The notes below the pieces were generated by a model. That model was not told the origin of the DNA. It was given only the letters and a program-made list of their open reading frames with translations, and searched no databases. A program made the translations under genes and the position numbers. From contig NIVC01000106.1 in NCBI GenBank assembly GCA_002269645.1, positions 744,001-808,000 of the forward strand: a DNA stretch of 64,000 nt, written 5' to 3'. Shown one piece after another: positions 23,801-26,800 of the stretch. Position 1 is the stretch's first letter. The number at the start of each line of letters is the position of its first letter. Source of the stretch: Macrostomum lignano (taxonomy: Eukaryota).

Positions 23801-26800
23801 GCCGGTGGCCACGAAGCTGTCGGCGGCGTCCCTGCCGGCTGGCCGGTACTCCAATCGCCGACACCCGCCCGGAAGCGTCGGCAGCAGCGGCGGCAGCAGC
23901 CAGACGACCGAACGTCAGCGTAACACCGCCCGACGGCACCAGTCGATGAGCTCGGATCCGGGGAACAACGGCAGCAGGCCCGGCGACCCAAGGAGGCGTC
24001 GGCATCATCGATGGCCAGCGGCGCCGAGCGGCCATCGTAGCTCCAGCGATGTCGGCGATGAAGATCCAGACTGCACTGACAACGACGCATTGCGAGATTT
24101 CACTGAACATTATTACTACGACGATAATGACGATGACGATGAGTTTGATGATGAAGAAGACGAGATGCTGGGCGGCGGAAGTCCCGACTATCCAAGCTGG
24201 GACGAGGCTATCGGCTTCTGTTGGGGCGGTAAGGCGCTCAAGGACTGCTGGGAGTGACAAGGACTTTTAGACTAGAGATCTGGATTGACTCAAGAGTTCT
24301 AGACCAGACTCCAGTACTTCTAGAATAAAGACCTCGATTGAGTCAAGGACTTCTAGAATAAAGACCTCGATTGAGTCAAGGACTTCTAGAATAAAGACCT
24401 GGATTGAGTCAAGGACTTCTAGAATAAAGACCTGGATTGAGTCAAGGACTTCTAGAATAAAGACCTCGATTGAGTCAAGGACTTCTAGAATAAAGACCTC
24501 GATTGAGTCAAGGACTTCTAGAATAAAGACCTCGATTGAGTCAAGGACTTCTAGAATAAAGACCTCGATTGAGTCAAATACTTCTAAATCTAGGCCAGAG
24601 ATTTGGATAGATTCAAGGACTTCTAAAATAGAGTTTTGAAATATTGAAATTTTGATAAAATTTTGGGTTTGTTTAAATGTACTTTATCAAAGTAAATTTA
24701 GAAGTAGAAGGCATGAGGGGGCTTCTGGGACAAAATTTTTCACCTCCTCCATAATCCCATTAAATCCATCCATATTATCCCTGACAGAATCAGAAAAAAA
24801 GGGGGGTCGCACCTGCTCCAAAAACGTCCTCCATAATCCCATTAAATCCATCCATATTATCCCTGACAGAATCAGAAAAAAAGGGGGGTCGCACTCGCTC
24901 ACAAAACGTCCTCCATAATTCCATTAAATCCATCCATATTATCCCTGACAGAATCAGAGCATTATCCCTGACAGAAAGAAAAGAAACAAAGACTCATTAT
25001 ATTTTATTTAAGATTTAAGATTATATTTTATTTTCGTAAAGGTGTTTTATGTTTACTAACAAACGACGACTGCAGAATCTTAAATCGAAACTAATTTATT
25101 CGATGACTTTCAATCGCTCTCTCCATTGCCACATTTGTTTGCAATTGATCGATCGTCTTGGATGTTATCGCACGACACTCTGGACATGTTATACTATTTT
25201 CTGCCGCATTGTACAAAGTTTGGACACATCTCAAGCAGAACGAATGCGGGCAGTCCAGCTTCCTAGAAGGCGAAAGCCAGTTGTAGCACACTGGGCATTC
25301 GCATCCACGCGGGATGTTTTCCCTCTCGCGGCTCTCCAACTCCTTCTCTTTAATTTGAATCTTTTCCTTTAGGTCTTTAACCACCTTCAAATAGTAATAA
25401 ATGAAACAATGCCATGATTAATGATAAAAAAGTACCCAGAAATACACAGAAAACACAAATTTCGAGTCTTACCTGCACTGATTTAAAAAATTCCGTATTT
25501 CTCTGAAGTGAACTTTCATTCCACACTATATATATAGTCTCTAGCGGACAGGTTTTGAGGTCGCTATCAGCGTGCAACGCGGTTGTCACATTTTGTGCAG
25601 TCCGTAGTTTTGACTTAAGATTTTGCAGTCGCCGTTTATCAGTAGCAGTTGAGGGCATATGTGGGGAGAAGCAGCCCGAGTGTTTCTGTGTTTGCTTAAA
25701 TATAGCTAGCCGTAGAAAATTCTAGAAAATTCCAGACTGTACAATCTTGGAGTCAAGCAGGGAAAACAATCGATATAGCTCAGTGTACGATAGAGCATGA
25801 GGCGTGTGAATGTGAGGGGTGAGACTTCTCTATAGACAAAGCATAGGGTGAGGAGGTGAGGAGCATGAAGGAGAAGCATGGTGGAAAGAGAGATTGTAGC
25901 CGAAACCAGTGTGCTCAAGACTGTACACTTGTGTGGAGAAAAGCGAAGCGAAGGCCAAAAGGCCAGTTTGCGATAAAATTTGGCCTTACTCGAGGCCAAA
26001 ATCCTTTGCGTTCTGGCCTTTTGGCCTTCGCTTCTTTTCGCTCCACACAAGTGGAGAGAGAATCATTCTGCTCTCTCAACCCCCAGCTCTTTCAACAGTC
26101 TTCCTAGTTCTTGACTTGGCGCGTGCAATGCAAAACCCACCCCACCTTCGCCTTGAACCCCCAACCCCAGTTTTGTCTTACTAAAAATAACAGCTTTAAC
26201 TAGCTTCCGAGCGATCGACTCACGAAATCCGCTTGAAGCCCCTATATTGTCTAGTCTCTTAAGCATTTCTTTGTCCCAACGATTCTTCTCCTCAGGAAAA
26301 TCTCTATATTTAACGTCATGCCACATGCAGACAGAGTCTAGCTCGTTCACAGGCTCATGCCCAGGATTTGGGTTGTTGTTTCCATCCAGCTGTATTTCAA
26401 GAGGATTCAAAGGCCCGCAATATTTATAGCCGGGAAGTGTCCAGCCTTTGTTTGGATGAGGAAGCTTTTCTATCAGTCCATGTGAATCTATTTTACCACC
26501 AGAGCGCTGCATTATTTTATTTAAAATTTTCTTTTTAAATAAATGACAGATCAGAAACTTAAAAAACTCTACTACAGCGACAAAGGATTCTTTGTAGGCA
26601 AAAATGCTGTTAGTAAACTCATGGAGCTGAGTAAAGAGCCAAAAGCTACAGTAGAAAAATGGCTCTCTAAGCAGGCTGTCTTTCAAGTCTATTTCCCACC
26701 AGTAAAATTTGAAAGGCCCCATTTCAGTATTTATAAACCTAATGAAGCGCACCAAGCAGATCTTTTGTTTCTCCCCAACGACTCAGGCTACAAGTATGCT

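Follow-up and report, generated by a model that had tools for sequence, protein, structure and literature searches.

A RING-finger gene at the left end of a Maverick/Polinton element in Macrostomum lignano carries an inverted repeat whose arms lie just inside its start and at its stop codon, and we give about even chances to the reading that this repeat is a selected mRNA helix, one in which codons 6-18 pair with the stop codon and the early 3' untranslated region (3'UTR) and so loop the reading frame. We infer selection for pairing from a comparison of RING lineages at the sequence level. More tentatively, the same comparison raises the possibility that a start-to-stop helix has been selected and repeatedly renewed in a fast-evolving RING ubiquitin-ligase gene, with different lineages having re-made it from different codons.

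The original prediction described a 33-bp inverted repeat with four mismatches, all synonymous third-position transitions, and this is borne out for the core of the repeat (25061-25093 on the plus strand against 25605-25637 on the minus strand), where 29 of 33 bases match, each of the four differences is of that kind, and both copies spell the same peptide of 11 residues. The repeat is real and slightly longer than first claimed: local alignment lengthens it to 40 nt (Table 1), with 34 positions matching and 13 residues readable from each arm, from the 3' arm on the plus strand. All six mismatches of the 40-nt unit are transitions, although one of them is non-synonymous (D/N). Because the minus-strand arm is coding, its changes pass through selection, and we estimate the probability that all differences would look synonymous by chance at roughly 0.03-0.1; the description of the repeat as codon-conserved is suggestive only. 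Shuffled versions of the window (the whole 64-kb stretch of DNA that was analysed) contained no match comparable to the core, and none of 300 shuffles reached the alignment score of the repeat. It is the sole inverted pair in the window with a score of at least 45 and a spacing of 100-3000 nt; no other Maverick gene there has the same design, and no second spaced inverted repeat is as strong. A repeat finder overlooked it because its longest exact run is 8 nt. The arms form a short, sharply bounded unit, with homology absent on both sides.

The assignment of the surrounding element to the Maverick/Polinton type (PMC4028283) rests on terminal inverted repeats, an rve integrase, an A32-like packaging ATPase, a double jelly-roll capsid protein and a polymerase. 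A Pfam scan of ten open reading frames, at the RING locus and along the element, matched rve, Pox_A32 and, weakly and below the curated cutoff, a double jelly-roll-like domain, whereas the protein-primed family B polymerase was judged only from its open reading frames and from the copies at two diverged paralogous loci, L011 and L012. About 78 bp (24977-25053) separate the left terminal repeat from the 3' arm. On the other side of the gene, a strong hairpin (-94.3 kcal/mol, z = -11; Table 1) is present in all copies, and an Rfam scan of 24500-26600 gave chance matches only, below threshold, on this hairpin (a microRNA precursor family and a C/D-box snoRNA family). Literature searches on the gene identifiers, and on Macrostomum with Maverick or Polinton, returned nothing relevant.

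The RING product, identical to the annotated M. lignano protein P0002, combines an N-terminal helical or coiled-coil part with a C-terminal C3HC4 RING, whose closest solved counterparts are RING domains of the TRIM and RNF8 type. Searching proteins with exon 1 alone yielded no candidates, the RING proteins had no match in a PHROGs scan, and P0156 and other RING matches were set aside as unrelated outside the RING domain. The promoter region includes an A+T-rich box (25704-25695), which the paralogues conserve, and, upstream of it, four alternating GAA/TTC five-base units (25733-25714) that look like a heat-shock element. The promoter core, intron and early 3'UTR of the RING genes are all better conserved than the exons, and this combination with fast exon evolution is a pattern typical of genes in host-element conflict.

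Table 1. Features of the RING locus and the enclosing element (window coordinates)
Feature	Position	Strand	Remarks
Left terminal inverted repeat	24702..24976	.	82-bp tandem units
Right terminal inverted repeat	39278-39552		Partner of left repeat, 100% identical over 275 bp
AATAAA hexamers 3' of the 3' arm	25032-25027, 25008-25003	-	
Plus-strand ATG	25049..25051	+	In frame with plus-strand 3' arm, 2 nt outside the repeated unit
3' arm	25054..25093	-	RING stop codon (25093-25091) and first 37 nt of 3'UTR
RING gene	25091..25658	-	2 exons, 159 aa
RING exon 2	25384-25091	-	Including stop codon
Third AATAAA	25100-25095	-	Overlaps last RING codons, upstream of 3' arm
RING intron	25385..25472	-	88 nt, GT to AG, unusually conserved between RING lineages
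RING exon 1	25658-25473	-	
5' arm	25605..25644	-	Within RING exon 1, nt +14 to +54 of the coding sequence, codons 5/6-18
RING core promoter region	25695..25733	-	
Hairpin	25921..26058	.	66-nt arms, between PLA2-like gene and RING promoter

Both arms would be part of the RING mRNA, a single minus-strand transcript: the 5' arm lies inside the annotated coding sequence and the 3' arm between the stop codon and two AATAAA hexamers, with the third hexamer upstream. In transcript models that hold both arms, unspliced and spliced, the partition function gives pair probabilities of 0.9-1.0 for a helix that dominates local alternatives, reaches 5 bp past the 33 nt first described, and has a predicted arm duplex energy of -40.3 kcal/mol. 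Pairing of the arms would thus form a helix of approximately 38 bp that closes the whole reading frame into a loop of about 510 nt (unspliced) or 420 nt (spliced), with codons near the start as well as the stop codon lying in double-stranded RNA. At some -40 kcal/mol and beginning 16 nt beyond the AUG, this helix would need to be opened by the first ribosome, and while closed it would conceal the stop codon and the proximal 3'UTR. We speculate that the effect is most likely on translation of the message, on its stability, or on both. Against such a panhandle, ribosomes in translation would open the helix, and if the AATAAA that overlaps the last codons were used, cleavage could fall inside the 3' arm.

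The RING genes at L011 and L012 carry the comparison beyond young copies, as their proteins are 49% identical to that of the window gene and third positions at identical residues agree in only 11 of 28 and 7 of 26 codons, respectively, which is near random. In each gene a significant inverted repeat connects coding sequence near the start with the bases at the stop codon (scores of 32 and 34, where the null maximum was 24-27; 0 of 300 shuffles), and each is predicted to form the long-range helix, with 24-29 pairs at p>0.3, so that RNA folding, proposed earlier as a check, returns the helix in the window family and in both paralogues. The consensus fold of L011 and L012 includes the helix, with one compensatory pair (A-U versus G-C), the only one overall in the three lineages that have this start-to-stop architecture. 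Differences between the arms are transitions in all nine cases across the three lineages, compared with 40-47% transitions in the background of the gene family. In the sense RNA these nine differences make five G.U and four A.C pairs, and the sense strand is therefore not favoured. The 5' arms of the paralogues, at nt +50..+77 (L011) and +40..+67 (L012), use codons other than those of the window gene, a difference between lineages that we count against a selected helix. The window-type 3'UTR could not be aligned to the 3'UTRs of the paralogues. The mRNA panhandle envisaged originally is thus supported in part, by its predicted pairing and its recurrence in two diverged paralogues; covariation is slight, and the sense strand is not preferred.

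Position and orientation of the RING cassette differ among L011, L012 and the window. At L012 the gene is inverted relative to its neighbours and retains its arms, with rearrangement breakpoints outside them, one approximately 64 nt ahead of the ATG and the other some 80 nt beyond the stop codon; the arms travel with the RING gene. A scan of metagenome and viral contigs found no RING relatives, and the comparison is therefore confined to M. lignano.

The main rival to a selected helix is a neutral templated inverted insertion, in which a template switch in the course of replication or repair placed an inverted copy of 40 nt from the gene's own 5' coding sequence beside the stop codon and left an undecayed relic with no function. 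We regard this as possible, though on the unlikely side. Fold-back copying is plausible in protein-primed, strand-displacing replicons, and the element is one, judged from its gene content; the unit is also as short, sharply bounded and free of flanking homology as such an event would leave it, and the even split between G.U and A.C fits a relic. In the window family all 36 helix pairs are kept in every copy and 34 of them never vary, but these copies are young (0-7% divergence), and the invariant arm therefore proves little and is weak evidence of function. The 3' arm, moreover, is conserved alongside other non-coding parts of the gene that are likewise better conserved than the exons, which weakens any argument from its conservation and agrees with a relic; homogenised flanks, rather than constraint on the arm, may account for the conservation of the non-coding parts. 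What speaks against a relic is that it would take two independent insertions, each precisely at the stop codon in a different lineage, or else a single old repeat that remained 85-90% complementary as synonymous sites saturated. The compensatory pair between L011 and L012 and the exclusive occurrence of transitions between arms likewise argue for maintained pairing, as do the only two arm substitutions across the window-family copies, both of which preserve it (U.G to U-A and A-U to G.U); the first of these, a G-to-A change in L006/L007, is the sole alteration of the 3' arm in any copy.

A role at the level of DNA, in which the arms pair in single-stranded replication intermediates or anchor recombination that exchanges the variable RING body between copies, appears improbable to us. 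Such exchange would fit the distribution of variation, since the arms enclose all of the variable and partly non-synonymous coding patches, the flanks being nearly identical, and pN/pS reaches 2.2 between the window and L006; the differing locations of the cassette at L011, L012 and the window would fit as well, and transition-only differences without strand bias would be expected of a strand-symmetrical constraint. However, the intron and the first half of exon 2, which also lie between the arms, are invariant, the L012 breakpoints fall outside the arms, and a signal for replication or recombination would have no cause to start at the stop codon in three lineages. In our preferred reading the helix is a selected cis-acting feature of the RING gene family and not a DNA switch.

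The plus-strand ATG at 25049 invites further readings of the 3' arm. In-frame ATGs for both arms are present as predicted (25049 and 25658), and the first opens a 107-aa reading frame (25049-25372) in codon register with RING exon 2, so that an overlapping antisense gene could have its first 15 residues constrained like the RING N-terminus. Differences between the arms, and the further change in L006/L007, are synonymous in that frame. Nevertheless, long open reading frames of this sort are common, since avoidance of three particular sense codons is enough to keep an antisense frame in codon register open; this one has no Pfam match. Relatives were expected to conserve the plus-strand reading if it mattered, but the antisense frames of L011 and L012 are shorter, that of L012 is in a different register, and their 3' arms do not spell the N-terminal peptide. 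We consider such a gene very improbable and judge the ATG at 25049 to be a coincidence as a second start. Nor could the plus-strand arm be taken as the beginning of a second RING gene under a promoter of its own, given that no homology extends upstream of the 40 nt. The more conservative explanation given originally, a remnant of an inverted paralogue with its own start, is weakened on the same grounds: the copied unit is only 40 nt, excludes this ATG, and has no promoter homology upstream.

Partial gene duplications do occur at the inner edge of terminal inverted repeats in linear DNA viruses and Mavericks, and the 3' arm resembles them in lying some 78 bp inside a terminal repeat and in reading inward from the terminus on the plus strand. 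Unlike such duplications, it has no counterpart at the right end of the element, which also led us to reject it as an extension of the terminal repeat, and at L011 and L012 it is the RING gene, rather than the terminus, that the arm accompanies.

Least credible of all is an invertible cassette, in which recombination between the arms would flip 25094-25604 to a second promoter and to the ATG at 25049 beside the left terminal repeat, much as in the site-specific inversion switches of the Hin/Gin family, the fim switch and the yeast 2-micron FLP system, where inverted repeats bracket a segment whose flip would swap promoter and start codon. The geometry permits it, each arm following an in-frame ATG and each ending in CTA, which reads TAG on the other strand (CTA at 25091-25093 is indeed the minus-strand RING stop), but the locus differs from those switches in having neither both orientations nor a dedicated invertase: a flipped state was found in none of nine other genomic copies, all of which share the orientation of the window, and the sole recombinase among the ten open reading frames scanned is the rve-type integrase, which has one frameshift in the window copy. 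The flipped state would have no poly(A) hexamer, AATAAA serving the present orientation alone, as had been observed (the plus strand has none in 25638-25950); the ATG lies outside the repeat, its upstream sequence resembles no RING promoter or 5'UTR, and the 3' arms of the paralogues have no in-frame ATG of their own. Although the whole RING gene is inverted against its neighbours at L012, that inversion moves the promoter and 3'UTR too and is therefore not an exchange between the arms, for which 40-nt arms of 85% identity would in any case be a poor substrate.

A selected start-to-stop helix would have its nearest parallel in flavivirus genome cyclization, where a 5' cyclization sequence within the capsid-coding region pairs with the 3'UTR (PMC7999817, PMC5376627). 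The shared traits would be an arm among the first codons that pairs with one in the 3'UTR, a long-range helix that loops the RNA, and competition between translation and pairing. The flavivirus elements, however, are part of an RNA genome and function in its replication by a viral polymerase, whereas the RING helix would form in the spliced messenger of a DNA element; it would also be far longer (about 38 bp) and include the stop codon, and the two have no sequence relation. In p53 mRNA the 5' and 3' untranslated regions base-pair, and the double-stranded region regulates translation (PMC10158990, PMC6468297). The RING message would likewise be an mRNA of cellular type with pairing ends, as predicted by folding, although both p53 arms are untranslated and their regulation proceeds through bound proteins, whereas the 5' RING arm is coding and has no known binding protein.

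The repeat marks a very fast-evolving Maverick accessory gene that joins a coiled coil to a RING domain. To our knowledge, a cyclization device of this kind is so far known mainly from the genomes of RNA viruses. Should the repeat be only a relic, it would be a minor oddity in the history of Maverick genomes. A functional helix, in contrast, would be a clear case of a DNA element's ordinary spliced mRNA cyclizing through its coding start and stop codon, and a simple natural system for learning how such helices set translation or RNA stability. If the helix has also been renewed from different codons in different lineages, this would point to strong selection for a start-to-stop helix that controls gene expression in a virus-like element.

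The 33-bp inverted repeat that brackets the RING gene is present as the original prediction described it: 29 of the 33 positions agree between 25061-25093 (plus) and 25605-25637 (minus), each of the four mismatches is a third-position transition that leaves both copies encoding the same 11-residue peptide, and each copy has an in-frame ATG (25049 and 25658). CTA at 25091-25093 likewise forms the TAG stop of the minus-strand RING gene, and AATAAA hexamers were found for the present orientation only. By local alignment the repeat grows to 40 nt (25054-25093 versus 25605-25644; 34/40 identical), with all six differences being transitions and one of them non-synonymous (D versus N). 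A degenerate pattern search of the window returned two sites, exactly the repeat copies (0 in 100 shuffles), and whole-window self-comparison revealed no second inverted pair with a score of at least 45 at a spacing of 100-3000 nt; the built-in repeat finder misses the repeat because its longest exact run is 8 nt. The spliced RING product, identical to annotated M. lignano proteins, has 159 amino acids; its N-terminal half is helical, and its RING is a C3HC4 domain of the TRIM/RNF8 type. Under this two-exon model the 5' arm of the repeat occupies codons 5/6-18 and the 3' arm the stop codon and first 37 nt of the 3'UTR; since the 5' arm is coding, the all-synonymous look of the differences has a chance of about 0.03-0.1 by our estimate.

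The proposal of an mRNA panhandle fared well as a predicted structure. We folded a transcript model that began 32 nt before the ATG and ended beyond the hexamers; unspliced and spliced alike, it was predicted to form a long-range helix, at pair probabilities of 0.9-1.0. Whether that helix has been selected we consider evenly poised. The arm duplex has a predicted energy of -40.3 kcal/mol, the helix reaches 5 bp past the 33 nt, and in sense RNA the six arm differences become four G.U pairs and two A.C mismatches. A nearby 24-nt stretch that overlaps a poly(A) hexamer (24999-25022) is also able to pair with the 3' arm in its first half (25076-25099; 79% complementary), and the long-range helix may thus have a local hairpin as a competitor.

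The repeat and RING gene belong to a Maverick/Polinton element, at its left end (Table). Its integrase carries one frameshift in the window copy, which is locus L002 on contig NIVC01000106.1, and in L001; seven other copies have both parts in a single frame, and L003, L005 and L006 do not. The polymerase reads as five separate ORFs and the capsid gene as two, perhaps through introns or breaks. Just outside both terminal repeats is a 145-bp perfect direct repeat (24552-24696 and 39552-39696), the start of which is part of the neighbouring 33-bp satellite array (24274-24636, left flank); it is far longer than the target duplication of a few bases expected of an rve integrase, and no short matching target duplication was seen next to the element termini. 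The right flank holds long low-complexity repeats (40669-42406 and 42421-43023) with ERR/KER-like and SILFY-like translations.

Table. Features of the element and its RING gene; positions are those of the window unless a locus is named (L011 and L012 are loci of diverged paralogues).
Feature	Position	Strand	Remarks
Terminal inverted repeats	24702-24976 and 39278-39552		100% identical, 82-bp units
RING gene	25091-25658	minus	first from left
RING exon 1	25658-25473	minus
RING intron	25472-25385	minus	88 nt, GT..AG
RING intron, paralogues	L011 8187-8273; L012 8187-8278
RING exon 2	25384-25091	minus
Strong hairpin	25921-26058		second from left
Phospholipase-A2-like (PLA2-like) gene	26063-26755	minus	Pfam PF08398, E = 1.7e-13; kept in L011 and L012
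rve integrase	26543-27579		after PLA2-like gene
Family B polymerase	28133-31978
A32-like ATPase	33967-34767	minus
Double jelly-roll capsid gene	36831-37939
Second capsid-like ORF	37949-38827

The hairpin, with 66-nt arms (-94.3 kcal/mol, z = -11), separates the PLA2-like gene from the RING promoter and is kept in all copies; Rfam returned only sub-threshold matches to it (a microRNA precursor family and a C/D-box snoRNA family). A conserved A+T-rich box in the promoter is preceded by five-base units, four in number and alternating between GAA and TTC (GGAATTTTCTAGAATTTTCT, minus-strand reading; region 25695-25733, minus), which look like a heat-shock element; at the equivalent place L012 has three (about 7918-7936) and L011 none.

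Besides the window, we surveyed nine genomic copies, each from a different contig, in which flanks and the number of 82-bp units vary; the RING gene occupies 3001-3568 of loci L001-L010, except in L005 (2103-2671). The 3' arm is invariant in this family apart from a G-to-A change in L006/L007, and the single change in the 5' arm, A-to-G, is found in the same two loci. Both preserve pairing (U.G to U-A and A-U to G.U), and 36/36 pairs are intact in all five distinct window-family sequences, although 34 of the 36 never vary, so that this family alone lacks statistical power for pairing. RING coding changes among these nearly identical element copies are clustered and mostly non-synonymous (window versus L006: 19.5 non-synonymous and 2.5 synonymous differences, pN/pS 2.2), with 0-4 differing sites each in the upstream region, intron and 3'UTR; this clustering points to diversifying selection or to patchy conversion by paralogues that have diverged.

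The most informative comparison was with distant relatives: an exhaustive profile-free search recovered two further M. lignano RING paralogues, the proteins P0007 (49% identity, full length) and P0012. Their loci, L011 and L012, belong to related Mavericks and have the RING gene beside the same PLA2-like and integrase genes; in L012 a single frameshift breaks the RING gene, whose annotation is a truncated product. At residues identical to the window's, third positions match in 11/28 and 7/26 codons, near random (L011 versus L012, 18/33). Each locus nevertheless has a significant inverted repeat that links start-proximal coding sequence to its stop codon, nt +50..+77 against stop +0..+27 in L011 (score 32) and nt +40..+67 against stop +8..+36 in L012 (score 34), with 0/300 shuffles scoring as high in either case. 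Their 5' arms cover codons of about 14-27, different from those of the window family; either differential loss from a single long ancestral repeat or its renewal more than once could account for this. The L011 3' arm is closer to the L012 5' arm (22/23 bases) than to the 5' arm of L011 itself, which a compensated frameshift has altered in the meantime. Folding predicts the long-range helix here too (29 pairs in L011 and 24 in L012, p>0.3), and the L011 + L012 consensus fold retains it, with one compensatory pair (A-U versus G-C) and one G.U/A-U pair.

In L012 the entire RING cassette has been flipped with respect to the PLA2-like and integrase genes (L012 7937-8940, L011 7933-8910), and a 125-bp fragment of the capsid-like gene 3' end has it on the opposite side from L011. 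The inverted stretch begins ~64 nt before the ATG and ends ~80 nt beyond the stop, from promoter core to early 3'UTR, and the arms move with the gene. Between RING lineages the intron is 86-91% identical (gaps excluded) against 65-68% for exons, whose synonymous sites are near saturation; L011 and L012 share 91% in the intron, 88% in the promoter core and 65-68% in exons. At the DNA level, BLAST matched the window gene to L011 in the intron alone; this intron is either constrained or homogenised. Directly after the 3' arm and poly(A) hexamer, both paralogues have a second conserved 3'UTR block (L011 8593-8620, L012 8613-8640), a 6-7-bp AAGATG .. CATCTT hairpin with a variable loop.

Weighed against a neutral templated inverted insertion, which we regard as rather unlikely, a selected helix has in its favour a start-to-stop architecture common to three lineages with saturated synonymous sites, a 3' arm that starts at the stop codon or within 8 nt of it in all three, the single compensatory pair together with two within-family changes that keep pairing, and arm-versus-arm substitutions that are all transitions (9/9) against a family background of 40-47% (17:25, 91:101). 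Counted against it are a hexamer overlapping the last codons, which could send cleavage inside the 3' arm, and the generally greater conservation of non-coding parts of RING genes than of exons, including window-family flanks that are almost identical around coding patches with pN/pS up to 2.2; if this pattern represents old coding alleles set in homogenised flanks, conservation of the 3' arm weighs less. The arm differences, 5 G.U against 4 A.C, also show no preference for the sense RNA. A role of the arms at the DNA level is quite improbable in our judgement.

We give still less credence to an antisense gene. The alternative start and promoter suggested for the plus strand did not hold up: ATG 25049 lies outside the 40-nt unit, and the 77 nt upstream resemble no RING-lineage promoter or 5'UTR significantly. 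In L011 and L012 the 3' arms lack their own in-frame ATG, and read in the antisense-ORF register they do not give the N-terminal peptide, so that the codon-conserved look is specific to the window lineage. An extension of the terminal repeat was rejected, as the right end has no copy of the arm. A DNA flip between the arms, the invertible cassette of the original prediction, we consider barely credible, as the between-arm segment is oriented alike in 10/10 copies (window plus nine), the flipped state lacks a poly(A) hexamer, Pfam scans of ten ORFs revealed no dedicated invertase, and the breakpoints of the sole observed inversion, in L012, fall outside the arms.

Our literature search found no description of this RING gene or repeat. 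Pairing of the capsid-coding start with the 3'UTR in flavivirus cyclization (PMC7999817) and 5'-3' UTR pairing in p53 mRNA (PMC10158990) are similar to the RING arms in their working, not relatives of them. On balance, the folding models and sequence comparisons leave an even chance that a selected long-range helix closes the reading frame of the RING mRNA into a loop, where it would probably affect translation or stability.
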